Shown piece by piece: positions 39,835-64,000 of a stretch of DNA of 64,000 bases. Every line of letters begins with the position of its first letter. The stretch's first letter is position 1. Source of the stretch: Lepidodermella squamata. Lineage: Eukaryota > Animalia > Gastrotricha. A program made the position numbers and the translations under genes. Location: assembly GCA_047495785.1 (NCBI GenBank), contig JBLDXI010000009.1, positions 3,968,001 to 4,032,000 on the forward strand. Direction: 5' to 3'. The notes under the pieces are model-generated. The model did not search any database. It was not told where the DNA came from and worked only from the letters and a program-made list of their open reading frames with translations.

Positions 39835-40768
39835 ATGCCTGCAACAGGTGCTGCCCATCGAATTTTGGTCTACGGAGGCAAAGGTGCTCTTGGCTCGACG
39901 ATTGTCTCGCATTTCGCTAAGGAAGGTTCATGTTGGATTGCTAGCATCGACTTCACAGCCAATGAAGAGGCCAATGCCAACTGCGTCCCGCCCGCCAATA
40001 CCACCCCAACCGGCACCGAGCTCATGGACCAATCCGATTGGCTGCTGAAGGACATTGCCGAGAAGCTGGGCGCAGAAAACGGCGCTGTTGCCGAGGAGAA
40101 GAAGCTCGATGCGATTTTCTGCGTTGCCGGCGGATGGGCTGGTGGCAATTCGGCGAGCAAGGATTTTATCAAGAATGTTGATTTGACCACTCGTCAATCG
40201 ATTTGGACATCGGTCCTAGCGGCTGAAATTGCGGCTAAATACCTGAAAACTGGCGGTATTTTGGTTCTTACCGGCGCTCAGGCGGCTCTAAACCCGACGC
40301 CGAGTAATTTTTGATTTTTCAAATTTTTTCACGAATTTTTTAAACTTTACATTTTTTTAGACATGATTGGATACGGCATGGCTAAAGCTGCCGTTCATCA
40401 TTTGACGAAATCGCTTGCTGCCGAAAAATCCGGCCTCCCTAGCAATGCGACTGTTGTTTCGATCTTGCCGTGAGTTTGCTTTTGATTCTTCGGTAATAAC
40501 TAATTATTTCGATTTTTCTCATTTTAGGGTTACTTTGGATACACCAATGAACCGTAAATGGATGCCCAAGGCTGACACCTCAACTTGGACGCCTCTTGAA
40601 TTCGTTGCCGAGTAATTTTTATTTTTTTCTCGATTATATTTTGGAATAATTTTTTGAATTTCCAGCTTATTTGCTGGTTGGCTGAAAAATGGTGCTAATC
40701 GCCCGGCGAGCGGCAGCCTGATGCAGCTGTTAACGAAAGACGGCAAAACCGAAGTTACTGCCGCCTAA
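39835..40768 (+). CDS. QDPR: Dihydropteridine reductase (exons 39835-40303, 40361-40469, 40528-40611, 40666-40768)
   Basis: [33 protein letters not shown] (YxxxK), [25 protein letters not shown]. Confidence 0.97.
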
Positions 40769-41472: not shown

Positions 41473-44400
41473 TTATTGCTCACAGACGAGGATCTCCGCG
41501 CTCCACTTGCCATCAGCGCCACAGGTGGCCTGGGTGGCCATGCCGGCGCGCGGGCGGCGACCAGCGTTGCAGTAGAACTTGACGGTCGAGCCGACAAAGG
41601 TGTTCGGGGCAACAGCGTAGCCTCCATCAATGGACGGGATATCTGTTGCAAAAAATTAAAATTTAAGGAGGGATTTTGAATAAAATTGAATTGTCTTACC
41701 GGGGCAGGTGAGGAGCTTGTTGCACGGGCGAACCTGGCCAGACCATTGACCGTTCGATTGGCAGGTAAGCTTGTACGAGGTGGCGCCGCTCTGGAGAGAC
41801 CAGCCCTTGTTGCAGGTGACGGTAGCTTCAGAACCGAAAGCAGCAGAGCCACCCTTGGCGAAGTTGGTGTTGACGATGGGGTCAGCCTGGCAGCCCTGGA
41901 GGGTGGTGTTATGGCCGAAGTCGATGTGGGCGCAGATGCCGCCGTTGAACGAGATGGGGTGGATGCGGAGCCAGCGGGCGACGATGTTCTGGCCGAAGAG
42001 GGTGCACACCTTGGTGAGGATGGCATCGCTGTTTCCGGTGAACGACTTGAGGGCACCGTTGGTTTCGCGGATCTCCTTCCAGGTGACGCCGTCCGTCGAG
42101 TAGGAGATGCCGAACGAGGTGACCCAGTGGTCGGTTTTGCGGCAGCCAGAGATGGCATAGTAGCCGACGGCGAAGTTGCCTCCGAGGTCAACCTGGAGCC
42201 ATGGGTTGCTGTCGCAGGCAGCTGGGCGCCAGCCGTTGGAGATGCTAGCGGTGTGGTCACCGGCCTGAGCACCCCAGCGGTCGCCGGACTTGGCAGTGAC
42301 GGCGCTGCAGGAACCAGCAGCGGAGCAGGTCTGTTCAGCAGCAGAGCAGGAACCGCCTTGAACGCTGGAGGCCTGGAAGTTAGAACCAGACAGAGCGCCG
42401 TTGGTCTGTTCGCGAGCGTTGAGGCAGACGTACTGGACGTGGGCGTAGAGCGAGCAGGTAGAGCACTTGTTCTTCGGCATATCTAGGCCAAGGGTGATGT
42501 AGTTGACCGGGGCAACGCAGCGTTGCTGGCCGTTGCAAGCAGTACGGGTGGGTCCAGAGATATCTTGGAATCCGCACTCGGCTTCGGCGTTGGAGCAGTC
42601 GTCGAGGATGTTCTCACCGTCGCAAGTCTTCTCACCAGCACGGCCAAGGCGACCGATGTGGGATGAGATGATCTGAATGTTTCCAGCATCGCAGTTCAGG
42701 TTGAGGGTACCGCCATAGCAGGCCTGAGCAACCTTGACATCGGGGCAACGATCACCAGGGATGGGTTTGCGGTCGTAGCAATCCTCGTCGACTTGACCAT
42801 CGAAGTCGTTATCAATACCATCGAAAAGCTCCTCATCGATGACACCGTCGCAGTCGTTGTCCTTACCGTCAGCAATAAACATAGTAGTCTTGACGCACTC
42901 GCCGAGAGCCTTGATGCAGGCACCAGTCGGGTAGGCGATGGATTCACGGTCACCAGAGCCGAAGATGTAGGCCTCGAAGGTGGTTCCCTTGACGCGGTGG
43001 TCAATACGGAACTGCTGCTTGCTCGAGTCAAGAGTGACAACGCCACCAATGAAGTCGGTGGTGCCGGGGATATCCTTCCACTGGACACCGGTGACGGGCT
43101 GTTCGTCGAGGATGAAACCAGCGCGGGCAGCCTTGTTGGTGATGATGGTCAGGTAGTTGGTGTAGGGCGAAGAGACACCGGTCGGGGTGACGAAGGTGTA
43201 GCCGAAACCGAACTGGTCGCTGGGAATGCAGACAGTCATGGAGGGATCGCCGGGGATCGAGTTGTCGACAGCAGAGCTGGCATACTGAACAGCCTGGAAG
43301 GGCTTGCCCTTCTGAGACGAGAAGCGCATCCATTCACTGACGGAGGCAGCGGGGAAACGGACGGATTCGCGGGCGCCAAGGTTGTACTTGAACTGACCAC
43401 GCTCGTTCGAGTCGATAGTGATGACTGTACCATCAGCAGCGGCGGTGACGACCCAGTAGTCGACGAGGCCGGCGACGCGGTTGGGAGTGGGCCAGGCGAT
43501 GCAGTCAGTACCCCAGGTATCGGTGGAGAAAAGCTGTTCGACCTGGTGATCGCGAGATGGCGAGTTACCGACGTTGACACGGGAGTTGCCGGACCAGACG
43601 GCGATGGGCTTGTCGGAGCTGATGACGGCACCAGTGAGATCGCATTCGTCCTGGATCTGGGCGACTTCGAATTCGCGGAGCTTAATGGTCAAAGTATCAC
43701 CATTTGAGAAGGTCTGTCCATTGTAGGGAAGAGCGCACTTCTTGCCGGCCGGAGGAGGAGCAGCCCAGTTGCCGTCATTCTTAGCCGAGGTCTTAGGAAG
43801 AGTGATCTTGATCGTAGTTTCGCCGTCATCAGCTGGGGTGATGGCGAACTCGCAGTTGTAGAATGGGGGCCAGTAGCAGTTGGCGACGTACTCAAGACCA
43901 AGAGCACGGCTGGGAATACCAAGGTAGGCATCAGCAGTGAAGAATTCCTTGTTGACACCATAGAACACGAAGTCATCATCAGAAGAAAGCTTGAGGGCCT
44001 TCTTCTCAACCGAAACACCAAAGTCAAGATCTTGGACCTAAACGAAATTTCTACTGAGATACGTCACAAATTATGCACGGAAACAGACCTTCCATGTGAA
44101 AGGAATGGTGCGGCGAACGGCCTGTTTATACGGAACCTTGAAGACCTGCTTTTCAGCAGTGTTACCATCAGGAGCAGGGTCAGACTCCAGAGTGACAGTT
44201 GAGCCCTGGAGATTGCGATCTTGGGTGACCCAGACCTCAAGAGACATGTTCTTGGGCTGAGCGACACGGTTGGCCATGAAAGCCAGGTAGAACTCGTTGC
44301 CGACAGTTGAGGTCGAGCAAGCGATCTCTCCCTTAAGGTAGAAATTCTTGTTCGGCTCAGTCTTTGCGACGGGGACAGTATCAGCGCATTCCTGACGGAA

Positions 44401-44714
44401 GAGCTGGCACTCGTTTTGATCTGTGACGAAGTTGTAGCCCCTGCAATTGGTGTTATCTGCGCACTTCTGACTGCACGATTTCAAGGTGCCGTCGCGAGCA
44501 CGGTAGGTAGCGCCTTCGATCAGCTGTCCGGTTTGAGTATCGCAGATACCACTGATTGTGGAAAATCCTCGGACGGCTGTTTTGAGAAAAACCAAAACAT
44601 TTACTTCAAATAACGTAGGCAACTCTTTCACTCACATGGACGGGGGATGTTTTCCGGAGTCAGCGCACAAAATGCCGCTGGAACCAGGGCCAAGAGAACG
44701 GCTACGCTATGCAT
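41473..44714 (-). CDS. Secreted PAN-IgGFcBP-acidic motif-SUEL lectin-F5/8C-2xSushi protein, paralogue A (4 exons)
   Basis: Signal peptide MHSVAVLLALVPAAFC; PAN (CSQKC…CRGYNF…CQLF); GNEFYLAF/TADAYLGIP/SDKPIAVWSGN/DHQVEQL/GDPSMT (IgGFc-binding N-term); DGKDNDCDGVIDEE; lectin CYGGTLNLNC..SSHIGR; WLQVDLG..SFGISYS..ARWLRIHP; two CCP repeats. Confidence 0.88.
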
Positions 44715-45051
44715 ACTCCGTTCTTTTAATAAAACTATGCGAAAAAAGGAAACCGGGATATCAATAAAGAATCAGGGTGAAAATCAGGAACCAGGAAATC
44801 GACGGGTGAAAGACATGAAGAGTCGATTATGATTGATTAGATCGTGCAAATAAAAACTCAGGTTATTATAGCCTTGCAATTTTGAAATCCGTGGTTTTGT
44901 GTTGATTGTTATCATTCATTAGATCGTTAGAAATTTTATTCCGTTGTTAGAAATGTCATGCTCAATGCAAAAGTTTGGAAAAGTGTTACAGAGTGAAAAC
45001 AGACTGTTTGTCAAGTGCAAAGTTAGTGGTTAGTGCATGGAAAATGTGAAA

Positions 45052-48000
45052 TCAGAGCAATTCACAAGTAGGAGCAAGATCACTCCACGACCCGTCTTCC
45101 ATGCATGTGATAGAAGTGACGCCACGCAGCCGGCGTCCGTTGAGACAGCCAAACTTGACAATGGACCCAACAAGATTGCCGGGACCAACTGAGAAGCCAC
45201 CTTCGACCGGTGGAATATCTGCAAAGAGATAGCTGGAATAAGAAGCCCGATGAAATTTATGGAGGACTAACCTTTGCAAGAAATGAATTTATCGCATTGG
45301 CTGAAGGAACCTAGCCACATACCATCTTTACCGCACTTGACTTTGTAGGCGACTAGCCCGTTAGCAGTTGACCAGCCTGGGTTGCATTGAACAGTCTCAA
45401 CTTGGTCGTAGGCAGCATCGATTCCACCAGATGCGTTGCTATTACTTATGCCTTGATATGAGCAGCCCAACGGTGACGGGGAATGGCCGAAATCAACGCG
45501 TGCGCACGGTGCTCCAACCCAAGATATCGGATGAATCCTCAAGAATCGAGCGACAATGTTGTGATCGAAGAGCGTACAGAATTGACTTTTCGCAGAGTCT
45601 GAATTACCGCTGAACAGCACCCAAAAGCCACCTGAGTTGCGAATTTCGCTGAATGACCTTCCATCGGAAGAATACGATATTCCGAACAGTGAGATCCAAT
45701 TGCTGCTCCTTCGACAGCCAGAGATCGCGTAGGATCCAACGGTGTAAACCGCTCCAAGATCAACCTGAAGCCAAGGCTTCTTGTCCCAACCACTCGGTCG
45801 CCAACCAAAATCCGAGTTCGCAAAGTTCGACCAGCTAGCAGCGTTACTTCCAAGGTTTGCCGAGCAGACCGATAACGAGCAGATTTGATCGGCAGTCCAC
45901 GATCCTCCGGTTAGCGAACTTGATGACTTGTAGTTTCTACCAGAGAAAATGCCACTTCTGGCCTCGATTTCGCCGAGACAGACGTACTGGACGTTCGCGT
46001 ATAAAGCACACGCGGGACAAGCCGATTTCGGAAGAAGCTCAAGGTCTGAGTATGTGACTGAGGCCACACAACGCTGCTGGCCGTCGCAGTTCCGACGGAT
46101 TGAGGGCGAAACGTCAAAAAATCCGCAATCGACATCAGCCGAACCGCATTCATCCACGGCATTTTCTCCACTGCATGCAGTTTCTCCGTGGCGACCGAGG
46201 CGTCCGAAGTTGGCAGAAATTATTGAGATGGTCGAACCAGAGCCGCAATTCAGCTTCAAAGTCGAGCCGTAGCATCCTTCGACTGCTTTGACGAGAGGGC
46301 AGCGATCGTCAACTTTTGACTTGATGGGTATTGGTGTGTCGACTGGCTTCTCATACCTTGCAAAGCAGTCCTCATCGATTTTTCCGTCGAAGTCATTATC
46401 ATTTCCATCGCCGCATATTTCTTCATCATAGATGCCGTCGCAATCATTATCTTCTCCATCAGCGATGAACATTTTGCCCGGTTCACAATCGCCGAGTGTT
46501 TTCAAGCAAGCGCCAGTTGGGTAGCCGATAGATTCGCGGTCCCCTGCTCCGTAGACGTACGCCTCGAAAGTTGTTCCTTTGGTTTGATGTTCGATCCTGA
46601 ACTGCTGCTTCGATGATTCCAGAATCACGAAACCACCAACCATATTTTCCTTCCCTGGGATGTCGATCCATGCTGGAAATATTGGTTTGTTGTTCAACAG
46701 GAAACCGCTCCGAGCAGATTTTGAGGTGATGATAGTTAGGTAGCTCTTGTAGACGCTAGACACTCCAGTTGGCGCAGCGAATGTATAACCATACCCAAAT
46801 TGATCCGTAGGGATGCAAACAGTCATCGAGGGATCACCAGGAATTTTGCTGTCGACTGCAGAACTGGAGTATTGAATAGCTTGAAATGGCTTGCCTTTCG
46901 TAGAGGAGAAGCGCATCCATTCGTTAACCGATTTCGCAGGGAACCGAACTGACTCTCGAGCATTCAACAAAACTTTGACCTGAGCCCGCTCATTGGAATC
47001 GATGGTAATTTCTGTGCGATCCTTATCAGCCGTAATCGTCCAGTAGTCGACTAGACCTTGAACCTGATTCGGCGTTGGCCAGGCGATGCAATCCGTTCCC
47101 CAGGTTTCAATCGGGAAGAGCTGCTCCACCAAATGGTCCCTGGAAACTGAATTACCGACATTGACGCGAGAATTGCCAGACCACACAGCGACTTGGTTAT
47201 TCGCAGAAATCACGGAGCCAGTCAAGTCACATGGTTCCTGGATTTGAGCAACTTCGAACTTGTTTAAAGTGACCGTGAAAGTTTCGCCATTTGTGTAATT
47301 TCGACCGTTCCAGGTGATGTTACACTTCATTAGCCCGATAGGCGGCCTCGCCCAGTCACCAGTGTTCTTTGTGGGAGATCTGGGTAGGGTGATATTGACT
47401 TCAGTTGTATCTTCAACGGCCGCGACAGCGAATTCGCAATTGTAGTTGGGTGGCCAGAAGCAGTTAGCAACGTAGATTTGGCCCAGGGATCGGCTTGGAA
47501 TTCCCAGAAAAGCGTCGGCCGTGAAGTATTCCTTGTTGACCGCGTAGAACACAAAATCCGAGGTTGAAGACAGCTTCAGCGCCTTCTTCTCAATCGTAAC
47601 ACCAACATCTCGATCGGTTATCTTGTAAATCAGGTGGAATTATTTTTCAAATTTTCAAAATATTGGATTGACTTACTTTCCAAGTAGATGGCACAAGAAG
47701 TTTAACGGCCTCCTTATAGCCAACCTTGAATTCTTGGTACTGCTTTACATTTCCAGTTGGATTCGGGTCAGATTCGAGGATGACGGTTATTGGATCGTTG
47801 CTGGTATCTTGCGTCACCCAAATTTCGAGAGACATGTTCTGGGCTTGCTGAACTCGATTCGACATGAATGCCAGATAGAACTCGGTTCCAACCGTTGAAA
47901 CGCCACAATCAATCTCGCCCTTGACATAGAAGTTTTCCTTCATATTGTTGCGACCTGGTTGAATTGATTCGGAACACTCCTTCTTGAATAGCTGGCATTC

Positions 48001-48297
48001 GTTGAGATCAGCGTTGAAATTGAAGCCAGTACAGAGCGGCTTCGAATCGCAGTTCCTTGCGCATTCCTTTAGCGTGCCATCTCGACCACGATAAACAGCA
48101 CCATCGATGGTTCCTTTTGATGCATCGCAAATGCCGGCGACAGCCGAGTATCCATCAATACCTGAATATACAAAATCTTTAGACTTCAGTTTATAATTCT
48201 TGAAAATAAATGTCTCACCTGGCCTGGGGTCCTTTGTCGCCTTGAGCTGACAGCAAACGATGGGCAGAGCAGCCAGAACAACGACGGCGAAAAGCAT
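45052..48297 (-). CDS. Same family, paralogue B (4 exons)
   Basis: Signal peptide MLFAVVVLAALPIVCC; ORFs 48297-47647, 47552-45267 and 45279-45052 carry the same domain order and intron positions. Confidence 0.88.
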
Positions 48298-48534
48298 TGT
48301 TAGTGATTTGTTATAAAATTGACTAGAACTAAGGGAAGCAAATGTTTGTTAGAAATGTTTTAGGGTTTTTATTACAAGATTTGAGCGACTCTAATTGATT
48401 TAGGGCACAATCCAGCTGCGCTGTTAAGAATTGAGCAACGCGATCCTCATAGGACCTCAAAAGTTTTGCTTCAGGCGAGTAAGCGTTATCGAAAGATAAA
48501 TAAGCATAGCACTCTAGGATGGAAGCTGAAGTTC

Positions 48535-51500
48535 TTAGAGAGATTCGCATGTGGGCACACGACTGCTCCAAGAGCCATCGTTTTGGCAAATTATGGAGTT
48601 AGCGCCATTCAATCGTCTGCCAGTAAGGCAGCCGAATTTGAGAGCGCTTCCGACAAGATTGCCACCCCCAACGAAGTACCCTCCATTTACGGCAGGGATA
48701 TCTAGGGTATTAAACTTGAAAATCTGAAAGTTTCATGGTGGTAAGGCATTACCTGGGCAAGCGAGGAACCTGTTGCACTGACTGAACGGACCCTGCCATT
48801 GACCATCAGTCCCGCATCTGACTCTGTAGCTAATAGAACCAGACCTGGTTGACCAGCCAGAATTGCATTGAACCGTGACTTCTTGATTGTAACCAGCCGC
48901 AACGCTGACTGCAGCGTTACTGTTGACAACAACCGGCGAATTGCAGCCCTGAGCAACTCGATCGTGACCGAAATCGACGTGAGCGCAAGGGGCCCCTGAC
49001 CATTTGATAGGATGGATCCTGACGTACCTCGCGACGATGTTTTGACCAAACAGCGTGCATAGCTTGGTAACAACAGCGTCTGAGTTGCCGGAGAAAGCGG
49101 TCAGCATACCATCTGGGTTACGAATCTCCTTAAAATTCACTCCATCAACAGAGTACGAAATGCCGAAGGAGGTTATCCAATGGTCGCTCTTCCGGCAGCC
49201 AGCAATTGCGTACGAGCCGACGTTGTAGACACCACCGAGATCAACCTGAAGCCATGGATTTCTATCGCAAGAACTAGGGCGCCAACCCAAGGCCGAACTT
49301 TCAGTTAGCGCTGCACTCGGTGCGCCATTGTTATCGATGCTGGTCGCGACGGCAGTTGAGCAACCCGAGGCGGAGCAAGTGTCTGCAGCACAAGAGCCGC
49401 CATTCAGGGAGGTGGATGATTTGTAATCCCGGCCAGAGAAAATTCCATTTGCGAATTCGCGATCGAGCAAACAGGCATACTGAACATGGAGGTACAGGCC
49501 GCAAGCCGAGCAGGCAGACTTGGGTGTTAGTTCAAGGTCTACATACGTAGCTGCGGTCGAACAACGAGTTTGGCCCTGGCAAGCTTTTCTGGTTGAAGCT
49601 GAGAGATCGACGAAGCCGCAATCAGCATCAGACCCTCCACACGCGTCGACATTGTTTTCGGCTCCACAGGTCAGCTCGCTGCCTCGGCCTAGACGCCCGA
49701 AATGAGAGGAAATGATTGAGATCGACGTTCCTCTGTCGCAGCTCAATTCGACAGTCGAGCCGTAGCAACCCTGAGCAATTTTCACCACAGGGCAGCGATC
49801 AAGGACCGGCGGAGGTCTAGTCGTAGTTGTCGTCGTGGTTGTAGTTGTTGTCGTAGTAGTCGTTGTTGTTGGCGGAGCCTCTTCGTAGCAATCTTCGTCG
49901 ACCAGACCGTCGAAATCGTTATCGATGTTGTCACCGCAGTATTCTTCATCGGTCACACCATCACAATCGTTATCTTTCTCGTCGCCAACTACAACTTGTC
50001 TCTCCGGAACGCATCTCGCAAGGTTCTTAATACAGGCTCCAGTTGGGTAGGCGTATGACTCGCGATTTCCGGCGCCGTAGATGTAGGCCTCGAAATTTGT
50101 CCCGCGCACTTGATGCTCGATTCTGAACTGTTGCTTGCCGCTGTCAAGAGTGATGAAGCCGCCGACCATTGACGTAGAGCCAGGGATGTCTTGCCAGCTG
50201 ATTCCCGTAACAGGTAGGTCATTCAAAATGAACCCATTTCGAGCCGCTCGATTAGCAATGATTGTCAAATAGTTAGTGTAGGTACTAGCGACACCAGTCG
50301 GCGTGACAAAGGTGTAACCGAAGCCAAACTGGTCACTAGGAATACAGACAGTCATCGAAGGATCACCAGGGAACTTCTCGTCAATAGCTGAGTGCGTGTA
50401 TTGAATTGCCTGGAACGGCTTGCCACTCGCAGATGAAAAACGCAGCCATTCCTTGATTGAATTCGACGGGAAACGGACTGACTCGTATCTGTTTAGATTG
50501 TAGGTGACAGTCGCAACCTCACTAGACTCGACTGTGACGACAGTTCCATCTTGAGAAGCGGTGATAGCCCAATAGTTGAACAAATTGTCCTGCTGGCGGT
50601 TCGGTGTCGGCCAGGCAATGCAATCAGTACCCCAGTTGGCGACGGTGAAAAGTTGTTCGACCAAATGATCACGAGAATAGGAATTACCGACGTTGACGCG
50701 AGAGTTGCCAGACCAAACTGCAATGTTGTCATCAGCTTCAATCAGCGCGCCAGTCAAATCGCATTTCTCCTGAATCTGAGCGACTTCAAATCGGTTGAGC
50801 GTTAGACGTAACTTATCGCCGTTTCTGTAGGTCCTGCCGTTGTAGTTCAGGTTACAGTCAGCGATACCGGGCAGATGCAGAGGTAGCGGCGCCGGCCATC
50901 TTCCGGCATTCTGCGCGGGTTTAGCGGGCAACGTGATTGTAACATTAACATTGCGGCCGAGGGTACCAATTGCAAACTCGCAGTTGTAGTTCGGAGGCCA
51001 GAAGCAGGAGGCAACATAGGTTTTACCTAAGGATTCCGTTGGAATGCTTGTGAAGGCATCAGTGGTGTAATACTCCTTGTTAACGCCGTACAAAACGAAT
51101 GGCTGGTCGGCAGAGGCGCGAAGCAGTTTCTTCTCAACGGTCACACCAATATCCTTGTCTGACATCTGTTTAAATAACAAGTAATGAGTGAAAGGAAGTA
51201 GTCTATCAAGAAATTGCATACCTTCCACGTGAAAGGGACCTCTCGCATAACAGCCTCTTTCTGAGCAACTGGAAATCTCTGGAAGACCCTGGAATTTCCG
51301 GTTGGATTGTCATCGGATTCGATAGTGACTTGAACTGGTAGCCTGCTGCGCTCCTGCGTTACCCAAATTTCTAACGACTTGTTAACCGGCCGCTCGACTC
51401 GATTCGACATGAAAGCGACCAGGAAGGACTTGCCAACAGTTGACGATTGGCACTCGATTTCGCCTCGCAGGTAGAAATTCTGATCCGGTTGACCTTGAGC

Positions 51501-51845
51501 TACCGTCATCGTGTCGGTACATTCTTGCCGGAAGAGCTGGCATTCCTGACGGATAGTGAAGAAGTTGAAGCCTTTGCACAGAATGTTCTCCGAACACTTC
51601 TTCGCGCAAGCTTTCAGGGTTCCTTCTCGGCCGCGGAAGTACGCGCCTTCGATAATGCCAACAGATGGGTTGCAGTAGCCATCGATTGTTGTAAATTCAG
51701 GTACGTCTAAAAGCAAAACGTTAACTTCTAGCCATAAGAAAATTTAAAGGAATAACTCACAAGGCAATGTATCGTCAGAACTTTCGAGAACCGATAACAC
51801 TGCTGGTAACCATGCCGCAGCTAAGATGTTGGCCCACCAGCGCAT
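48535..51845 (-). CDS. Same family, paralogue C, with a poly-Thr hinge (4 exons)
   Basis: Signal peptide MRWWANILAAAWLPAVLS; ORFs 51716-51141 and 51228-48733; last exon DIPAVNGG…PTCESL*; T17 tract at 49819-49869. Confidence 0.88.
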
Positions 51846-52141
51846 ATTTGCGAGTAAAGCCTATTTAATTAACGAAAGTCACACAAGGTATTAGAGCGTG
51901 GAATTTTCTGAAGAATTCAGAAGTGGCCTTTCTGTGTTGTGAGGTTTTTGCGGGGTCGAAAATTCAACTTCTGGAGTGAAGCGCGTCCGCGTTATAACAT
52001 CCACATTAGCGGCTTTATTGTTGTCGTCGCTCATCGCGCGCGCGCCGTGCACCAGACTCGCCGTTAAAATGGATGGAAAAAAATCTAAACAATAAAGTTA
52101 TTCGGCGAGCCGTCGTGGTTACCTTTCAACATTAAAGGTTT

Positions 52142-52158
52142 TATAAACAGGTGTAATT
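52142..52158. promoter_or_regulatory. Conserved upstream motif TATAAACAGGTGTAATT of paralogue C
   Basis: Identical 17-mer at 56715-56731 upstream of paralogue D; core AGGTGTAAT at 62534-62542 upstream of paralogue E. Confidence 0.55.
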
Positions 52159-53127
52159 GCTGCTCTCTCATCGACGGCCACTCGGTGAATAGCTGCTGCT
52201 GGTGTCTGACGTTGTTAATAAGCTGCTGGCTCCTGGGCGCCGTATCTTTTGTTGCTCGCTGCTACTGCCCTAAACAACAGCGCGCATCATCTGTTTCTGC
52301 CGCCGACGCAGCATCATCGCTGTTACAGTCATAATAAAACTGAAGCCGGCCGGCTGGTGTGTATGCCGCTGCCGGCTGTCACGTTTATTGCATCGCATAA
52401 ATCGCCGCTAACTTCTGTCAACCCTGGGTTTTGGTTATGCGGCCGAGGAACCGTCATCGACGGCTTATAATAATAATATTTACAAAAAAGCCTCGAAAAC
52501 TACATGCACGCGCATCTATACGGCCATCGGCCATATCATCAACTTGAAAATAACAATGTATTCTTTATCAGTTCAACCGAGAATTATGAGAACGAATTTA
52601 ATAGCTTTTTTATGCGCAACGGCTTTGCACTGTGAAAAATTAACAGCGTCTGTAGCGGCAACGAAAAGGCAACGCGTTCCAGGCGTCACCTTAATGAGGC
52701 CAACTTTCAGGCGTCAGGAAACATCTTTTCTCACATCCTTAACATCACATTCTCGCATAAGATTACAAAAAATGCAGCAGCCGGAAACTGAAACTGAAAC
52801 TAATCGGCTTGATCGGAGTTGATTTAACTCATGAGACATACGGCTACCATGTACCAGTCTAGAGCTGAAAGCTGAATTCTGAAAACGGGTGTAGTATTGC
52901 ATATTCTGGGAACTCTAGACACTCCGCGAGTTAGGTTGGCAGTAGTTTTACTTCATTTCCAACAATTTTTTTGTAACAATATTGCGTCTTCAAGGCAGGT
53001 TTCCGGCTAATAAGTAACTGGAGTTTGCGTTGGCTTTTTGAGCCTACGGCATATATTACATAACACGACTCAAGCTATTATCGATCAATGATATCTAGTT
53101 TTCATTTGGCTTATTATCCTCTTTTGC

Positions 53128-56100
53128 TTATTGTTGGGCCTCGCAGGTTGGCGCAGCGTTGCTCCAGGTGCCGTCTTGACGGCAGGTGGCCTGAGCGGAG
53201 CCGCGGAGGGTGCGGCCCTGGTTGCAGCGGAACTGGATGGTAGAACCTGGCAAGGTGCTTGGGCCAACAGCGTAGCCGCCGTCAATGCTTGGCATATCTG
53301 AATAGAAAACAGACTCAAATATAATTTTTCAAAAAATAAAAAATAAAATTCTTACCCGGGCAGTGGAGGAGGGAGCTGCAGTCACGGAAGTTCGAAGCCC
53401 ACTTGCCGTCAGCTCCGCACTTGACAGAGTAGGAAGTCTCGGCTTGAGCGGTGGCCCAGCCCTTGTTGCAGGTGACGGAGGCGGAGTTTCCAGCGCCGAC
53501 GTTAGCACCAGCGGCGAAGTTGGAGTTGGCAACAGTGGTGAGCGGGCAGCCCTGGAAGGTCGAGCTGTGGCCGAAGTCGATGTGGGCGCATGGCCAGTTA
53601 TTGTACTCGAGCGGGTGGATGCGGACCCAGCGAGCGACGATGTTGTATTGGAAGAGGGTGCAGACCTTAGCCGTGACAGCATCGGTGTTGCCGTCGAAAG
53701 CCTTGGGCTCACCAGTGGCCTCCTTGATGATGGTCCAGGTGACACCATCCTGCGAGTAGGAGATGGCGAACTTGGTGGTCCAGAAGTCGTTGCGACGGCA
53801 GCCAGAGATGGCGTACCATCCGACGGCGTATGTTGATCCGAGGTCAGTCTGGATCCAGGACGAGTTCTTGTCGCATGAGGCCGGGCGCCATGCCTCAACA
53901 GCGTTGGTCTGGGTGTGGTCACCCTTCGACGGGTGCCATGTGTCGCCGCTCTCAAGGGAAGAGTCACCGCAGGTGTTAGAGAGGACCTTCGACTCAAGGT
54001 AGCTTGAAGCCTTGCGGTTGTCACCAGTCAGAGCGCCGTTGGTCTGCTCGCGAGCGTTGAGGCAGACGTACTGGACGTGAGCGTACAGCGAGCACGACGG
54101 GCACTTAGACCAGCCGTGGAACTGGTTGACTGGCAGACTGCAGTTCGATGCACCGTCGCACTGAGTGCTAACCGTGGTTGAAATATCGTTGAAGCTGCAG
54201 CCAACATCGGCGCCAGAGCAGGAGTCGAGGACATTGTCTGAACCGCAGGTCTTCTCACCAGCACGGCTGAGACGGCCGTAGTGGGCAGAGATGGTCTTGA
54301 TGGTGCCATCGTTGCACTTGAGGTTCAACTGGCCACCGTAGCAAGACTGAGCTGTCTGAACAGCGGGGCAACGGTCGGTGGGGACAACGCGGCGGTCGTA
54401 GCAATCCTCGTCGATTTGACCATCAAAGTCGTTATCAATACCATCGAAAAGCTCCTCATCGATGACACCATCGCAGTCGTTGTCCTTGCCATCAGCAATA
54501 AACATAGTAGTCTTGACGCACTCACCGAGAGCCTTGATGCAAGCACCAGTCGGGTAGGCGATGGATTCACGGTCACCAGAGCCGAAGATGTAGGCCTCGA
54601 AGGTGGTTCCCTTGACGCGGTGGTCAATACGGAACTGCTGCTTGTTCGAGTCAAGGGTGACAACGCCACCAATGAAGTCGGTGGTGCCGGGGATATCCTT
54701 CCACTGGACACCGGTGACGGGCTGTTCGTCGAGGATGAAACCAGCGCGGGCAGCCTTGTTGGTGATGATGGTCAGGTAGTTGGTGTAGGGTGACGAGACA
54801 CCAGTCGGGGTGACGAAGGTGTAGCCGAAACCGAACTGGTCACTGGGAATGCAGACAGTCATAGAGGGATCGCCGGGGATCGAGTTGTCGACAGCAGAGC
54901 TGGCATACTGAACAGCCTGGAAGGGCTTGCCCTTGGGGGAGGACATACGCATCCATTCGCTGACGGAGGCAGCAGGGAAACGGACAGATTCGAGTGACTG
55001 AAGAGTGTACGTGAACTGGCCACGCTCGTTCGAGTCGATGGTGATAACGGTGTTGTCGAGAGCAGCGGTGACGACCCAGTAGTCGACGAGGCCGGCGACG
55101 CGGTTGGGAGTGGGCCAGGCGATGCAGTCAGTGCCCCAGGTATCGGTGGAGAAGAGCTGTTCGACCTGGTGATCGCGAGATGGCGAGTTGCCGACGTTGA
55201 CACGGGAGTTGCCGGACCAGACGGCGATGGGTTTGTCGGAGTCGATGTAGGCGCCAGTAAGATCGCATTCGTCCTGGATCTGGGCGACTTCGAATTCGCG
55301 AAGAGTGATGGTGAACTTGTCGCCGTTCGTGTAGGTTTTGCCATTGTAGGGAAGAGCGCACTTCTTGCCGGCCGGAGGAGGAGCAGCCCAGTTACCGTCG
55401 TTCCTGGCTGAGGATTTGGGAAGAGTGATCTCAATGGTAGTTACACCGTCTCCAGCTGGGGTGATGGCGAACTCGCAGTTGTAGAATGGGGGCCAGTAGC
55501 AGTTGGCAACGTACTCAAGACCAACAGCACGGCTGGGAATACCAAGGTAGGCATCAGCAGTGAAGAATTCCTTGTTGACACCGTAAAAGACGAAGTCATC
55601 ATCAGAAGAAAGCTTGAGGCCCTTCTTCTCAATCGAAACACCAAAGTCAAGATCTTGGACCTAAAGAAAATTGCTATTGAGAAACGTCGCAAAATATGCG
55701 AGGAAACAGACCTTCCATGTGAAAGGAATGGTGCGGCGAACGGCTTGTTTGAATGGAACCTTGAAGACCTGCTTTTCCGCCGCATTTCCGGTCGGATTGG
55801 GGTCCGACTCGAGGGTGACAGTCGATCCGTTGATGTTACGATCCTGGGTGACCCAGATCTCAAGAGACATGTTCTTGGGCTGAGCGACACGGTTGGCCAT
55901 GAAAGCCAGGTAGAACTCGTCACCAACGGTAGATGTCGAGCAGGCGATTTCTCCCTTAAGGTAGAAATTCTTGTTGGGAGCGGCGCGAGCGACGGGCGTT
56001 GTGTCCGAGCACTCCTGACGGAAAAGCTGGCATTCGTTGCCGTCTGTGACGAAGTTGTAACCCTTGCACAGCGGGTTGTCCGAGCACCTCTGCGCGCACG

Positions 56101-56335
56101 ATTTCAGGGTGCCATCGCGACCCCTGAAGAGAGCACCCTCAATGGCGCCCTGTGAGGCATCGCAGACACCAGAGATGGTCGAAAAGCCACGGATGGCTAA
56201 ATGAAAAGAAATAGTGTTCATCATCGCAGCATTTCTCTATTAGTAAGAAAACTTACTCGGGCGGGGCGTGTTTTCTGGCTGAAGAGCGCAGAAGGCTGCC
56301 GGAACAAGGGCAAGTAGAACGGCTACGCTATGCAT
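53128..56335 (-). CDS. Same family, paralogue D (4 exons)
   Basis: Signal peptide MHSVAVLLALVPAAFC (as in A); exon 3 is open from 55660 through the 54952-53315 ORF (read by eye); ends TCEAQQ*. Confidence 0.88.
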
Positions 56336-56714
56336 ATCCGCTCAGTTACAAAACTAGATGAAGGATAAAATAAATGTTCAATCAAGCTTCAAGGTTTGAG
56401 GGGGAAAATGTGGGGATTTTGCGAGAAGCAAATTTGTAGCAGTGACGGGGATGTTGCAAAAAACCCCGATAAGTAGTCATTCGCGACAAACAAGGTTTAC
56501 GAAGTCGTATGTTGTGATAACGGCTTTGTTGTGTGCTATTATTTTTGCCAATAGGTAAGTATTGTATGGCGTGTTAAAACACCGGCTGCTACAGTTGCGC
56601 TTTTTTATCAGGTTCAAAAACCCCTAAACAAAACAAGTGTTTTCTAAGACGGTGACGATGCTGCGCGCGTGCGCATCACACGGTCGCCATTTTTAAGCAA
56701 GCACACAATAATAA

Positions 56715-56731
56715 TATAAACAGGTGTAATT
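56715..56731. promoter_or_regulatory. Conserved upstream motif TATAAACAGGTGTAATT of paralogue D
   Basis: Exact match to 52142-52158, at a similar distance (300-380 bp) from the ATG. Confidence 0.55.
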
Positions 56732-57443
56732 TGCCGGTCGTCGAATGCGGGCTCATGCGTTGATGAGCCCACCGTGTGGCGACTAATAAATAACAGCGAT
56801 TCGTAACTAAGCCGGAGCCCCACCAGCCAGCGGCGCCACTGCGATTCAGGCTCTTTTGTTTTTCGACTGGTCGCTCGACGCCGGTTTAGCCGAGTCATAA
56901 AAATGACGCGAAATATGAACACACGTTTGTTTCGCCGGCCGGCTTAATGTTCACGCACCCTGGAACTAAACCGTCGGTCGATACTCGACAGCTGCTCGTT
57001 ATTATCATCCAATGCAATAAAACTTCGCGCAAATTTGCAAATCCTTAGTTTGATTGTTATCATATAAATTTATAGCCTTGTCCTCGACGAGACGCCTCCC
57101 ACGCCGCTATTAAGAGTACGCGTTTGAGGAGTTCAACATTTCGTTGAGGTAACTTTACGCGTCAACTCATCGGCAGTCCACACTATTTCGGTCGTTCGTA
57201 GGCTGCATGACGTGTCGTATATCATTGTTTAAGTTGGCTAATGAATCAGGTCGATTATATTTACCCCGATTTACGACACTAAACATAGTTGCAAAAAATC
57301 TGTCAACAACTCGGTCATGAACTTGTTACATCATGTTTTATTTCCACACCAAAAGTAGCAGAGTTTGATCATTTGGTTTCAGAGGTAAAGATGTAAGAAA
57401 ATTCCGCAGAATCCAGCTGCGGAAATTAAAGCACATTTCCGGG

Positions 57444-60400
57444 CTACAATTGTTCGCAAGATGGTGCTGAGTCGCTCCAAGTTCCATCGGTTCTGCATTG
57501 AATCGAACTCTGCCCGTTAAGTCGACGGCCATTGAAACAAGCATAGGTGATCCGATGACCGGGCAGGTTTCCAGGGCCACTGGCATATCCTCCATCAACT
57601 TGAGGAATTTCTGAAAGAAAGAAAATGACGAATAAAAATAAGGAAAAATATGATTCGAAAGTCGCTTACCAGGGCAGTAGTTGACTACATCGCAAGCTTT
57701 AAACGAAGTAGACCAGGTTCCGTCAGCTCCACAAGCAACTTGGTAGCTTTCTACTCCATCTGAAGTCGCACGGCCCTTGTTGCAAACCACCGTTGCAGTT
57801 TGACCGTAGCCAGCAGTACCACCATCGGCCCAATTACTGAACGCAACTGTTTGGGGTGGGCAAGCTCTCGGCACAGCTCCGTGGCCGAAATCGGCGTGAA
57901 CACACGGCCAGTCGTTGTAATCAACCGGATGAACTCGAACCCACCTAGCAACGATTTCATATTGGAACAGAGTGCAAACATTGACTGTATTGGAATCGGT
58001 ATTTCCGTCGAAGAGATTCAGCCCGCCATCTCTGTTTCTAATGATTGTCCAGGTGGAACCATCAAGTGAGTAAGATATGGCGAATTTCCGCGTGAAGAAG
58101 TTGTTCCGGCGGCAACCTGAAATAGCATACCAACCGACAGGGTAGATAGAGCCAAGGTCGATCTGTAGCCATGATGAGTTGCGATCGCATGATGCCGGTC
58201 GCCATGCTTCAACAGATCCGACACCAAAGGCAGACTTCTCGGAATGGAAGGTGTCGGTAAATTTCGCGTATGCATCTCCACATGAAGATCCAATGGAATT
58301 AGTCGCGAGCCAACTAGATGCTACTCGATTCTTCCCAGTCAAAGAGCCGTGCTGTTGCTCCTTATCACTCAAACAAACGTATTGAACGTGAGCGTACAAG
58401 GAGCAGGCCGCACACTTGCTGTTTCCCTGCGAAAGATAGCTAACAGGGACAATGCAACGAGATTGGCCGTTACATTGTAGGGAAACAGTGTCTGACACAT
58501 CGACCCAGCCACAGCCCGATTCGGAACCTGAGCATTTGTTGTAGGCATTCTCAGCGCCGCATGTAGTCTCGCCAGATTTACCAAGACGGCCAAAGTGGGC
58601 TTCAATGACTTTAACGAGAGAACCGTCCTCGCAGCGGATCGAAAGTTGGCCGTTGAAGCAAGCCTGAGCCTGTCTAACCTCAGGGCAGCGATCGCCGGTT
58701 ATGATGGGCTTTGGGGGTTCGGGAGGCGGAGCTTCGTCGTAGCAGTCTTCGTCCACCTTACCATCGAAATCGTTGTCAACATTATCGCCACATAATTCTT
58801 CGTCAACAACACCGTCGCAATCGTTGTCATCAAGATCGCCGATTTCCATATCTGTCTCTTTGCACTCCTCCAAATCACTGATGCAGGCGCCGGTCGGATA
58901 GGCGACAGATTCACGGTCTCCTGATCCGTAGATGTAAGCCTCGAAACGTGTGCCGCGAACAGCGTGTTCGATACGGAATTGCTGCTTATCCGAGCTGAGT
59001 TTATAGATACCGCCAACCATCTGAGTCTCAGCGGCAGGAATGCCTGGAATGTCAACCCAGGTGATACCAGTTAGAAGGTTTCTATCAAGGAGGAATCCGT
59101 TCCTGGCAGATTTTGCCACGATGATGGTTAGATAATTCGTGTAGTTGGTTGCAACTCCTGCTGGTGTGACAAAGGTGTAGCCGAAACCAAACTGAGCAGT
59201 TGGGATGCAGATAGTCATAGCTGGATCGCCAAACATCGACTGAGGAATTCTACATAAGAAAAGCCAAGTTATAGATTATATCCCATGCAATACACCTTCA
59301 GTCTTACCCAGTCATGTTAACTGCAGAGTGAGAGTATTGGATTGCTTGGAATGGTTTGCCCTTCGGCGACGAGAAGCGCATCCATTCAGTTACAGAAGCT
59401 GCCGGGAAGCGGATGGACTCATTTTCTTGCAGTGTAAACGTTTGACGCGGTCTTTCGTTCGAGTCGATAGTGATGACGGTATCATCATCGTTCGCAGTAA
59501 TCACCCAGTAGTCGAAAAGCTTAGGAACGCGGGCAGGTGTTGGCCAGGCGATGCAGTCCGTTCCCCATGTGTAAGTCGGGAATAACTGCTCGACGAGATG
59601 GTCACGTGACAGCGATCCTCCGACATTGACACGCGAATTGCCCGACCATACTGCAACATCTTTATCAGCTGCAATAAGTGTACCAGTCAAGTCGCACTTG
59701 TCCTGAATCTGCATGACGTCCAAGGCCTGAAGTGGGACGTTGAGAATCGTCTCGCCATTAGTGTATGTCCTTCCGTTGTAGGGCACGGCACATTTAGCCG
59801 AGGTAATGAGAGGTTGGTCCCAACGTTCAGTCATAACGTTCTTAGCTGGGGTAGGCGGCAGAGTGATGTTGACCTTGGTTGGCTGAGAAGCGGCAACGGC
59901 GAATTCGCAATTGTAGTTCGGTGGCCAGAAGCAACTGGCGAGGTAAAATCGGCCCAATGTTGGAACAGGCATACCCAGATAAGCATCGGCCGTGTAGTAT
60001 TCCTTGTTAACGCCATAGAAAACGAACTGCTTATCCTTCTCCGTCTTCAAAAGCAGCGCCTTCCTCTCAATGGTTAGAGCAATATCGGAATCTTTGACCT
60101 GAAAAAAACGAAGTTGAAATTATTGATTGAGCTACCTAACGAATGAAGCAGAAAAAAAATAAGAAAAGCGCAAGAAAAACTTTTCACGCAACACGTGTAG
60201 ATGGTTGCTCAACAAATTTCTGCCGAAATTGTTCAACTTTACTTCTGGAATTTTCGATTCCCCTTATAGCTTGATAGTTTATAGTTAAAATTACAAAAAA
60301 ATGGTAAAAAATGCTAATTTTGGTATAACTTAGGAACCGAGGAATCTCGCTAGATATACAAAAATTGTTGGTGGGATCAAGCTAGTGTCTCTACGACAAT

Positions 60401-62172
60401 CTGAATCACTGAATCACTGAAAGCACTTTTAAGGGCAACTCTGGGGTTTTCCGTGTTTTAAGGAGGATGGGAGCATTTTAGAGGTCTGAAATTCGAAAAT
60501 TTAAAATCCTCAAGAAAAACTGACTAAAAGAACATATTGGAATCCTCGAATCGTCCTTGATTCAAGTGAACACACGTTTTGCGATTTACAGAAATTCGCC
60601 AAACCCCACTTTTCACTTGTTACCGGTTCGGAGAATAGTCTAAAATAATGAGAAGTATAATCATTTTCATTTGAACATTACCTTGAAAGTGAATGGGATG
60701 GTGAGAAGTTTGACCTCCTTGTTGCCGAGCGTGACTTGCTGGCGGACTCGAGCGTTGCCAGTCGGGCTAGGATCAGACTCAAGCGTGATTGTTAGGCTAT
60801 CGTACTTGTCCTGCGTGACCCAAATTTCAAGCGACTTATTAACAGGCCGCTCGACACGATTCGCCATAAACGCGACAATGTACTGATCGCCAGCAGTTGA
60901 AACGTCACATTCAATCAACCCGCGCAGGTAGAAATTCTGGCGGGGGACTGACGGTCCGGCGACGACGGGCGATGTCGAATCGCACTCGCGACGGAATAGC
61001 GTGCATTCTTGCCGGTCGATAAGGAAATTGAAGCCTTTGCACAGGTCATTTCTTCGGCACCGATCGGCGCACTGTTTCAGCGTGCCGTCGCGCCCGCGGA
61101 ATGAAGCGCCTGCAATCAAATCATCATTGCCGCAGATACCGTCAACAGCGGTGAAGTCAGCAACGCCTGTTAATAGGTGGAAATTATAAAAAATATGAAA
61201 ATATCATTGACTGATGATCTGTAATCATGTACTCGAAATTAGGGAAATTAGGAAATAATTTCAAAATCACGATCCTTTGAATTGGGATAATTTGGAAAAT
61301 ATCGAAAATCTTCGAAAAAGTTTGTTCTGAAAACCTAATGAAAAATGATGTACTCCTAAACTGAAGAAACTCGGCGTTACAGTCCGTGTTTTTTTGGTCC
61401 GGCGCGATCCTTCAAAATCCGGTAAATGAGGGAGATCAAATTAGCAAATTATGAGTATTAATGGGATTTCTCGACCCTTACGATATATGGATCTGATATA
61501 TGGCGTTGGAAGTTCATGAAAATTAATTAGAAAATAATTTATAACTTATTGGATTCTATAATCAATTTGTACTAGCAATGTAATTAATTAACAAATGCAA
61601 ATTATTTTTCGAGTCAAGGAGGGCTGAGAAGGACGTGAGAAGGCTTTACTTGAGAGTTCTTCGAAGGCGCTAAAAATGATAGACCGCTGTTGTTAGAAAA
61701 TTTTCGCCAGGTAGCATAGCATTTCCAAAGGTAGCAATTAAAATTGCTCTAAAATTTTCTGAAATTTACATGATACCTTGGTTTTATAAAAAAAAATAGC
61801 TGAAGGTATGCGTAAATTTGGTCACCCGGGCGGTAGCGGTTGGATACCTCCCGGCTAACTGGTGATTGTAGCAGAATTTTTCAAGCCTTCCATGATGAGC
61901 GCAAGAATATCACAAATTTTCCACGTCCTAAATTTCAGAAAATTTTGAAAAAGAAACATCTTAACCTAAAATTAAACCACCAAATTTAAAAAATAAAACT
62001 ATTTGTTGAAAGTTAATATCCTTTTTGATTAGCCGAAATCTTATTAGCGCCAGATTTATTGGTCTAGTATTTTTACAAAAAATGACAACTTACTTGGCCG
62101 GGTAGACTCGGTTTTCCTGAGTTGACCGATTACCGCGGGTAAAAATGTCACCAAAATCGCGATTAACCGCAT
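57444..62172 (-). CDS. Same family, paralogue E (5 exons; one extra intron and two enlarged introns)
   Basis: Signal peptide MRLIAILVTFLPAVIG; ORFs 61119-60667, 60050-59304 and 59236-57338; last exon EIPQVDGG…PSCEQL*. Confidence 0.86.
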
Positions 62173-63342
62173 TTTTGGTGAGCGGGATAAATATTCGAGA
62201 GCGAAAAATATTCTTAAAGTCGCTACCTATTATTAGAGCACAAGTTAATCACTACAGCTAACAATAGCGAGTGAACTCGGAGCCGAGACGCGCACGGAGC
62301 CACCGCGCATCATTCATTATTACAGTTATAACGCGCGCGCGCGCAAAAGGTCGACGCAAGTTCAGTGCGCGTCCTCGTTACAACTGCGCGGAAAACATCT
62401 CGCAGTACGTAAAAAACCAGATAGGATCAATTTATACATTGAGTTATACATTGAGTTGCTTAGATAGTATATAAGAACTAAAAAAGAATAACCACCAGGG
62501 TTTGCGCATTGATTGCCCTTTGCGTCTGTTGCAAGGTGTAATAAAACGCCGCTAACGCTGTAACACTATGTTAACCTTTTAAACGCGCGTCGCATGTTTT
62601 GTTATAATACGCGACAATGTTGGCGACTGTGTCATCTGATGCTTTATTGCCGTTAGCTACCTGGTATTGCAATATACACCGAACGCCAGGCAGTGAACGT
62701 AAAGGTATAAGTCGCCATCTGTTTATGCACTGGATATACAAGAGTGAGCAGATGAACAGCGCTAATTTTGACACAAAGACGGCTATTTTGAAAACTTAAC
62801 AGTTGCCTTTCACACCTATGCCGCATCTCTTCCTTGAGTACCAGCCACCAGACTGATATTGAATTCAATGTTAAATTCTATTCCTGAATTTCTTTGAAAT
62901 TGTTTGTAAAATTACCTTAAAATTATCTTTTTGATATTAAAATGGAAATTAAATTAATTATATTAGGAATTGGTGGCATGATCGACAACGTCAAAGTTTG
63001 TAACAAAGCCAAGAGATATTTAATAATTAAAAAATTCAAGCATCGATATTTCTTCCCGATATATGAAGCTATGGATGATACGCGACAACTCACAAAGCTT
63101 AACCTTATTCTCATTCTCACCGGTTTTATTTTTTGAATAAAATGTTAGCCAAATCCCTTGTCTTTGATCATCATGCGGAAATGACTGCAAATTTCAAGGG
63201 CTGTGGAAAAAAATCGATGGAAAATATGAAATTCGAAAATCGGAAAGCGGTTAAGAGCAGCATTCACGTGAAAAAAAATTACAAAAATAATGGCAGCATT
63301 CACAAAATTATTCAAAGTCAACATTTATAGACAGTTTCAGTG

Positions 63343-64000
63343 TTATTCGCAAACTGGGGGCGGAGCACTCCATTGGCCGTCATTTTGGCACGTGATTGCC
63401 TGTGCCCCGCGGAGGCGCCGATTCGCGGAGCATGTGTAAGTCACTCGATGACCTACAAGGTTACCAGGACCACTTGCTATCCCGCCAATAATTTGAGGAA
63501 TTTCTGCATTTAAATTAAAAATCACAAATAGTAATCAATAATACGACATTTTCAAAAATATTTTACCTGGGCAAGAGTTTACTAAACTGCATTGTCGGAT
63601 CTCGGTCGACCACTGGCCCTCTGCACTACAACGCAGGTCGAAAGACTGGGCGCCAGCTGCCGTTGTTCTGCCTTGGTTGCATGTCACAGTTTCCTTTGTT
63701 CCAACAAGAGCCGTGCCACCATCCGACCAATCACTGTTACCAACCGTCGCCGATGGGCATAATTTCGCCTTTTGACCATGTCCGAAATCAACATGAGCAC
63801 AAGGCCATCCTTCGAATTCAACCGGGTAAATACGCATATATCTGGCAACGATTCCGTAAGGCAACAGGCTGCAGACTTTAATCGTGACGGAGTTAACATT
63901 CCCGTCGAAAATTTTCACCCCGCCTGACGCGTCGCTAACATTGGTCCAAGTAAGTCCGTCGATAGAATAAGCAATGCTGAATTTAGTCGTGTAATAATTG
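63343..64000 (-). CDS. Same family, paralogue F (3' end only: F5/8C end + 2 Sushi; truncated by the window edge)
   Basis: FDGNVNS…IVARYMRIYPVEFEGWPCAHVDFGH…TCNQG…; last exon EIPQIIGG…WSAPPPVCE*. Confidence 0.85.

Follow-up and report, generated by a model that had tools for sequence, protein, structure and literature searches.

A tandem family of secreted IgGFc-domain mosaic proteins in the gastrotrich Lepidodermella squamata, with separate histories of head and tail

Genes of the array

The window analysed here is a stretch of 64,000 nucleotides of contig JBLDXI010000009.1 from the gastrotrich Lepidodermella squamata (assembly GCA_047495785.1, positions 3,968,001 to 4,032,000). Positions 41473-64000 of the window hold a head-to-tail array on the minus strand. 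Self-comparison and scans for open reading frames (ORFs) show six related units: five complete genes (g1 to g5) and one (g6) of which the window has the 3′ end (Table 1). The encoded proteins are mosaics, in which we distinguish a head (the IgGFc domain and the acidic motifs behind it) and a tail (SUEL, F5/8C and Sushi domains).

The original prediction of five intact copies and one partial copy in tandem held when the splice sites were read. In g1 to g5, all introns are GT-AG, and the joined exons form a single open frame with one terminal stop each, which rules out pseudogenes. The array genes have three introns in common, with phases 1, 0 and 1. Although the introns had been described as shared, g5 carries an additional phase-2 intron within its IgGFc domain, and has two long introns (927 and 583 nt). 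Introns are otherwise mostly 50-60 nt, intergenic distances in the array are 237-1282 nt and the GC content of the window is about 43%. The paralogs are 53-58% identical, except for g1 and g4 (76%), indicating that they are old duplicates and not an echo of the assembly.

The proteins were expected to be secreted and to lack a transmembrane segment, and hydropathy and the intact frames agree with this. The N-termini of g1 to g5 are hydrophobic and signal-like (best 11-residue hydropathy 2.25-3.1). Past the signal stretch, hydropathy revealed no membrane segment in these five proteins: no 19-residue window exceeds 1.32, and the C-terminus is not hydrophobic. The first mature residues past the signal peptide (L-x-P-E-N-x-P-R-P-S) are conserved across species in g1, g4 and two homologs (P0002 and P0089), which is unusual for a linker.

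An Rfam scan gave no matches. We found no long inverted repeats joining introns across the array, and thus no sign of RNA pairing there. The long first intron of g5 contains a perfect 18-nt inverted repeat with arms 160 nt apart, which is possibly a small non-autonomous element.

Table 1. Features of the window (positions are those of the window; ENC, effective number of codons; Cys, cysteines)
Feature	Position	Strand	Details
g1	41473..44714	-	1024 aa; exons 44714-44636, 44576-44089, 44037-41700, 41642-41473; class I tail; head g4-like; ENC 36.5 (strong codon bias); 43 Cys past signal peptide
PAN of g1	44335..44562	-	aa about 32-107
IgGFc_binding / FCGBP_N region of g1	42904..44334	-	aa about 108-567; interrupted by intron 2
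Two acidic motifs of g1	42775..42903	-	DNDCDG..DE and DNDFDG..DEDC
SUEL domain of g1, rhamnose-binding lectin (RBL) fold	42424..42753	-	11 Cys; without canonical sugar site
F5/8 type C (discoidin) of g1	41911..42423	-	long variable loop on the face of the factor VIII spikes
Two Sushi/CCP modules of g1	41473..41910	-	shared last intron between them
Homogenised tract, g1 side	42775..43311	-	last IgGFc subdomain and acidic motifs, aa 432-610
g2	45052..48297	-	1026 aa; exons 48297-48219, 48161-47677, 47621-45272, 45218-45052; class I tail; ENC 56
g3	48535..51845	-	1049 aa; exons 51845-51761, 51706-51222, 51165-48753, 48701-48535; class I tail; ENC 55
g4	53128..56335	-	1012 aa; exons 56335-56257, 56196-55712, 55660-53356, 53297-53128; class II tail; ENC 36.5 (strong codon bias); 41 Cys past signal peptide
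Homogenised tract, g4 side	54398..54934	-	aa 431-609
g5	57444..62172	-	1033 aa; exons 62172-62094, 61166-60682, 60098-59308, 59249-57670, 57610-57444; class II tail; ENC 55
Inverted repeat in first intron of g5	61751-61946
g6	63343..64000	-	3′ end only: F5/8C end, two Sushi, shared last intron, stop; continues past the window
Glutathione S-transferase genes	about 400-15000	+	several in tandem
P-element/THAP-type DNA transposon	4231-8513		terminal inverted repeats of about 40 nt (95% match); 8-bp target duplication GATGGAAC
Transposase-like ORF of the transposon	5600-7033	-
Flavin amine oxidase exons	20251-21104
Complexin-like exon	25219-25410		acidic/basic helix
Long ORFs	28289-30931	-	451 aa and others
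RanBP zinc finger and OTU protease gene	32092-34470
eIF3a and QDPR	35117-40760

Domain architecture

The domain order assigned to the complete genes is signal peptide, PAN, IgGFc_binding (FCGBP_N), two acidic motifs, SUEL, F5/8C and two Sushi modules. Pfam scans were made exon by exon, and homology searches used single exons or natural homologous proteins. The IgGFc_binding domain (PF17517), which begins at about residue 108 behind PAN, scores 112-179 bits against a curated cut-off of 25.6 (E 2e-52 to 5e-32). F5_F8_type_C (E 1e-20 to 2e-15), PAN_1 (E 7e-7 to 9e-6) and the Sushi module of the last exon (E 1e-10 to 2e-6) were also recovered. The first Sushi module scores more weakly (E 2e-5 to 0.09, with no match in g2), and the SUEL matches (E 2e-7 to 1e-3) do not, for the most part, exceed the curated cut-off. 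Pfam thus supports the predicted assignments, with scores close to the cut-off or below it for SUEL and the acidic motif.

The acidic motifs had been described as DNDCDG repeats. The first motif indeed reads DNDCDG, but the second reads DNDFDG. A match to Cu-binding_MopE (PF11617) occurs in g1 and g4 only and lies below the curated cut-off of 27 (22-24 bits, E 4e-5 to 2e-4 overall and 8e-5 to 2e-4 in g1 and g4); matches of similar strength are found in 24 of 60 related heads. In g3, a short poly-Thr linker starting at position 49869 separates the acidic motifs from SUEL. VWD, C8 and TIL have no Pfam match in any array exon.

A structure model of the exon-3 part of the g1 IgGFc region is all-beta, with a predicted local distance difference test (pLDDT) score of 89. 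It matches predicted IgGFc clusters of the Atlas with template modelling (TM) scores of 0.75-0.86, while a feature-based search of the Atlas yielded no match of use. A full-length model of the natural homolog P0002 has a pLDDT of 69 and does not resolve the PAN and acidic parts.

Relatives and distribution

The best homologs, at 52-61% over the whole of exon 3, come from metagenome assemblies in ENA and from JGI sets. On three of the marine ENA contigs (L001, L002 and L006), copies with the complete order of domains lie in tandem, and some ENA copies have introns at the same three positions as the array genes. The same ENA assembly contains the best match to QDPR, beside eIF3a (contig L011), in the order and orientation seen in the window. 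The core of eIF3a is 69-86% identical between the window and this marine contig; a separate homolog search with eIF3a yielded distant matches only. The shared eIF3a-QDPR synteny, together with the family copies in one assembly, indicates that these contigs derive from a second animal, related to the first. The synteny ends at QDPR, which is followed by the IgGFc array in the window and by a P450 gene in L011.

Four short JGI contigs encode additional members. All three that span intron positions are intronless there, and one of the intronless members (L007) ends in poly(A). A search of JGI metagenome contigs with one exon found no family locus.

When 1.84 billion proteins were searched with a profile and the matches then scanned locally for domains, an IgGFc head joined to a SUEL-F5/8C tail turned up only in the ENA and JGI metagenome sets. 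IgGFc with the acidic motifs occurs in 79 retrieved proteins, among them proteins with other tails from bivalves, abalone, Lingula, Owenia, amphioxus and Methylomicrobium. The family heads form their own clade in a quick tree (Shimodaira-Hasegawa-like approximate likelihood ratio test, SH-aLRT, 100). PKD proteins of Methylomicrobium (P0016, P0017 and P0019) contain the IgGFc and acidic unit as it is in animals, at about 31% identity. Horizontal transfer from this bacterium is unsupported, since the bacterial heads are a long branch of their own in the same quick tree.

The original prediction called the family lineage-specific. This is correct above the species level only, as the second animal has both the family and its introns, and the IgGFc and acidic unit extends to molluscs, a brachiopod, amphioxus and bacteria. 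The suggestion that the combination is not that of a named protein is supported: no named protein with this domain order was retrieved, and the literature searched holds no description of it. On the sequence evidence, the architecture is real, intact and undescribed, and lies within a known promiscuous domain family.

Head and tail have separate histories

From the IgGFc region through the acidic motifs, g1 and g4 are 89-99% identical; beyond these motifs, identity drops to 44-58%. On the N-terminal side, it climbs stepwise from 73% in PAN to 99% in the last IgGFc subdomain. The most similar tract has 98.9% amino acid identity, with 12 synonymous differences in 179 codons, and stops at the sequence EDCY. 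The longest identical run is 134 nt, compared with at most 70 in 2000 shuffles. Intron 2 is alike in the two genes and introns 1 and 3 are not. Assembly collapse of g1 and g4 is ruled out by the persisting synonymous differences and the differing introns.

The head tree groups g1 with g4 (100/99) and rejects a group of g1, g2 and g3 (approximately unbiased test, p-AU 4e-5), whereas g1 joins g2 and g3 in the tail tree. The tails form two classes, separated at 98/99 in a tree that leaves out two long-branch paralogs. Class I consists of g1, g2, g3, polF and polG, and class II of g4, g5, polA, polD, jgi5 and jgi7, so that each class has genes of both species. Tests on the tails reject g1 with g4 (p 0.0009), polD with polG (p 0.0007) and a clade of the genes of this genome (p 0.007). 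Synonymous sites are near saturation. As judged by these trees, the two tail classes predate the split from the related marine animal.

The marine animal repeats the pattern. Over the stretch of head end available for both, 166 of 169 nt agree between its genes polD (class II) and polG (class I), which then diverge at the same EDCY junction as g1 and g4. Two of its contigs (L014:657-7884 and L015:516-7746) hold a pair of IgGFc heads and, behind it, a pair of acidic-SUEL-F5/8C-Sushi tails, such that the first head has no tail behind it and the second tail has no head before it. This arrangement supports the treatment of heads and tails as separable, exchangeable units. The first tail on these contigs runs on into a sequence that, judged by eye, is C-type-lectin-like. 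A further variant in the marine animal (L008:84-5686) contains three consecutive IgGFc and acidic units and then one SUEL-F5/8C-2xSushi tail.

Codon bias and cysteine parity

Codon usage is strongly biased in g1 and g4 (ENC 36.5), as compared with g2, g3 and g5 (55-56) and the eIF3a exons (46-51). In the marine animal, polD (36.1) and polG (39.5) stand apart from the other paralogs (49-54), and their preferred codons are the same as those of g1 and g4. The JGI members also prefer these codons. The short fragment polE appears to be codon-biased as well, and may be the start of polG. The bias extends through the unconverted tails and GGG is avoided; both observations fit selection for translation better than GC-biased conversion. 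We infer that the codon-biased genes (g1, g4, polD and polG) have very abundant products.

The mature proteins g1, g4, polA and polD have odd numbers of cysteines (43, 41, 41 and 41), while g2, g3 and g5 have even numbers (42, 44 and 42). In the second acidic motif of the g1/g4 subfamily, EELF replaces EE-x-C, and the loss of this first cysteine gives rise to the odd count. The odd members are therefore predicted to have one free thiol. Codon bias and cysteine parity together favour a bulk matrix role over pattern recognition.

Ligand-binding potential of the tail

Among solved structures, the SUEL domain can be aligned with those of rhamnose-binding lectins and latrophilin, and its best match there is a rhamnose-binding lectin (E 6e-9). 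It has the RBL fold, with the eight core cysteines and a YGR-like motif, and has three cysteines beyond this core. The sugar contacts of the lectin CSL3 are Glu7, Tyr27, Asn74, Asp79, Gly83 and Lys86, and a DPC motif is typical of its family (PMC3269628). The equivalents of Glu7, Asp79 and Lys86 are replaced in 11 of 11 SUEL members, with Tyr, Phe or Gln at the Glu position. DPC and KYL motifs are absent from all 11 SUEL domains compared.

The closest solved relatives of the discoidin domain are those of factor VIII, factor V, neuropilins and lactadherin. Discoidins of the factor V/VIII C2 type bind membranes via hydrophobic spikes formed by Met-Phe and Leu-Leu pairs. In a comparison with factor VIII that covers g4 among the paralogs, polar or small residues stand opposite the Met-Phe pair, and the Leu-Leu pair faces a gap. 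The loop on the spike face spans 35-43 residues; identity among members is 19% there, versus 58% in the core. Fucose-binding (F-type) lectins have the motif H-x26-R-x-D-x4-R/K, and a regular expression for it matched none of the 11 discoidin domains.

The description of these proteins as multi-lectin is therefore not borne out: the sugar-binding residues of SUEL are gone in all 11 members, and the discoidin belongs to the factor V/VIII-neuropilin type and has no F-type motif. The term overstates what their sequences indicate, and the array proteins are better called multi-module binding proteins with predicted ligand binding.

Comparison with known proteins

Invertebrate FCGBP_N domains occur in many architectures and are expanded in amphioxus, as far as the available text of Lang et al. 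2016 describes them (PMC4948705). Like the array proteins, the mosaics covered there are secreted, have FCGBP_N near the N-terminus and lack VWD. By comparison with these, the array adds a preceding PAN domain and a SUEL-F5/8C-2xSushi tail, an order absent from the named proteins retrieved. Shuffling of partners is already known from invertebrate FCGBP_N proteins, so that the combination of domains by itself is of modest novelty. The head/tail pattern repeated in two species lifts the family above a plain domain shuffle, with a function that we can only propose.

Uncharacterised proteins of molluscs, such as Tegillarca (KAJ8315039.1) and Mizuhopecten (XP_021365252.1), of Lingula (such as XP_023933408.1) and of Owenia have an IgGFc domain with the same pair of acidic motifs directly behind it (about 30% and 55% identity), and include the top Atlas structure match (TM 0.86). 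However, their tails are TSP1/LDLa or EGF arrays, they lack PAN, SUEL and discoidin, and they form a clade separate from the array family. The Branchiostoma lanceolatum “FCGBP” (CAH1244450.1) has IgGFc, acidic motifs, F5/8C and one Sushi in the same order as the array. It differs in that a C-type lectin replaces PAN, SUEL is missing and TSP1, laminin G and fn3 are added. With an identity of only 25% in the IgGFc domain, independent shuffling is probable.

Vertebrate FCGBP and amphibian PRIT are secreted IgGFc-domain proteins of mucus and glue, as is proposed below for the array proteins. FCGBP dimerises via spare cysteines (PMC11796319, PMC11237159). Unlike the array proteins, it is a VWD-C8-TIL array with GDPH cleavage, and PRIT has tandem IgGFc domains with disordered repeats between them; neither contains SUEL, discoidin, PAN or Sushi domains. 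The window genes have one IgGFc domain each, not a tandem as in PRIT, and the three-head marine variant has acidic motifs between its heads. Gel-forming mucins have VWD units and a long region rich in proline, threonine and serine (PTS), and the array proteins show neither. Sea star Sfp1 (PMC4275877) is secreted and cohesive, and contains discoidin and galactose-binding domains, but is built on VWD, C8 and EGF without an IgGFc head, and was compared with the array by domain types only. Rhamnose-binding lectins such as CSL3 and the latrophilin RBL domain share the fold, the core cysteines and the YGR-like motif with the array SUEL, which differs in lacking the sugar-binding Glu, Asp and Lys and the DPC motif, in its extra cysteines and in its direct fusion to discoidin. 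By sequence, then, the family is neither FCGBP, nor a mucin, nor a canonical SUEL lectin.

Proposed role

Both species pair class I and class II tails, in codon-biased genes, on near-identical head ends, which suggests a two-part secreted gel or coat. We therefore favour, with a probability of roughly 0.5, the reading that g1 and g4 are the major subunits of such a material, in which heads assemble and tails bind partners. The family would consist of soluble, secreted, acidic proteins of about 110 kDa that form bulk parts of an extracellular gel or coat, such as mucus, a body coat, glue or an egg coat. Of these, g1 and g4 would be the heavily expressed forms, and g2, g3 and g5 minor ones. The IgGFc and acidic head would be the assembly part, through head-head contact and probably Ca2+ or another metal at the acidic motifs. 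Gene conversion could keep the heads of g1 and g4 compatible, so that the two forms co-assemble, and their spare cysteine could form an inter-chain disulfide. The tail would bind a partner via the variable discoidin loop rather than a canonical SUEL sugar site, and the two old tail types would bind different partners. IgGFc domains are known in gut mucus (PMC11796319), in candidate proteins of an oyster larval secretion (PMC6337334) and in the main frog glue protein (PMC11237159). The mucus, glue, larval-secretion and Sfp1 precedents support a matrix role by analogy.

Several points weigh against this proposal. The array proteins have no long PTS or mucin region and no VWD, as compared with gel-forming mucins and FCGBP. 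The IgGFc domain has no sequence or fold match among solved structures (best Z 7.5, a weak beta-sandwich with Z under 8). Its role in human FCGBP is not known, and IgG binding has been contradicted. The acidic region is modelled with low confidence, such that metal binding and the free thiol there stay predicted. Moreover, the polG contig holds just the last 169 nt of the head, and the polA head is partly homogenised yet has no codon bias. Finally, homogenisation of the heads could be a neutral by-product of the tandem arrangement.

The last point can be extended to an explanation in which the shared head is non-adaptive, which we regard as doubtful but worth serious consideration. In that case, g1 would be a chimera or conversion product of highly transcribed tandem neighbours, and the match in the second species a coincidence or an effect of assembly. 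Conversion among tandem paralogs is common, and the stepwise rise in g1/g4 identity is what tracts differing in age would produce. The polG contig begins inside the near-identical stretch in a short-read assembly, and a near-identical repeat would itself cause a break there. The heads of polA and polD are also 81-87% identical. On the other hand, both species show the break at one and the same domain boundary, g2 and g3 remain unconverted despite lying between g1 and g4 and being nearer, tails of 44-58% identity stand directly beside a tract of 92-99%, and the remaining synonymous differences exclude a collapsed repeat. If homogenisation were nonetheless non-adaptive, the matrix role would stand and the argument for co-assembly would fall.

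It is rather unlikely that the proteins instead serve in pattern recognition or agglutination, as soluble components of the gut or body surface, with a constant head that recruits an effector or cross-links, and variable tails that bind microbes or food bacteria. The constant-head, variable-tail design is in keeping with this idea, as are the variable discoidin loop, the old tail classes, the PAN and Sushi modules, the marine head-head-tail-tail locus with its C-type-lectin-like end, and the place of FCGBP as a mucus barrier protein. However, the canonical sugar sites are gone, and the diversity is low and old, with two classes kept across species in place of fast turnover. The very strong, conserved codon bias and the spare cysteine better fit bulk structural use.

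True multi-lectin cross-linkers, with a galactose- or rhamnose-binding SUEL and a discoidin for another glycan joining glycoproteins, are improbable: lectin cross-linkers do occur in glues, and the SUEL fold is real and retains its YGR-like motif, but Glu7, Asp79 and Lys86 are replaced throughout, DPC, KYL and F-type motifs are missing and the nearest solved discoidins (factor VIII/V, neuropilin and lactadherin) are not lectins. As for a non-canonical sugar site in SUEL or discoidin, the alignments leave room for one.

A bolder version of the gel or coat proposal is a conserved system of constant heads and exchangeable tails in a little-studied animal group: the FCGBP_N and acidic head would be a polymerisation module, and the secreted material, possibly adhesive-tube glue, would be made from two co-assembling subunits with heads matched by conversion in this array, and with head-tail pairs mixed by splicing at a second locus. 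We consider this version unlikely, but it would provide the first direct handle on the function of FCGBP_N. Gliding bacteria, human gut mucus and frog glue all contain this domain, which has no assigned job or solved structure. The family described here consists of compact, soluble, single-head proteins, and presents a natural experiment in which two species keep the head end alike and two old tails apart. Should the head prove to serve in assembly, this would have implications for FCGBP and PRIT as well. The array proteins are candidates for gastrotrich mucus, coat or glue; the literature searched contains no molecular description of these, and no paper on gastrotrich adhesive proteins.

Other features of the window

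The P-element/THAP-type transposon sits within one of the glutathione S-transferase genes. The complexin-like exon was judged by eye. The long minus-strand ORFs at 28289-30931 have no Pfam match. The gene at 32092-34470 encodes RanBP zinc fingers and then an OTU protease domain, and we take its product to be TRABID/ZRANB1-like.

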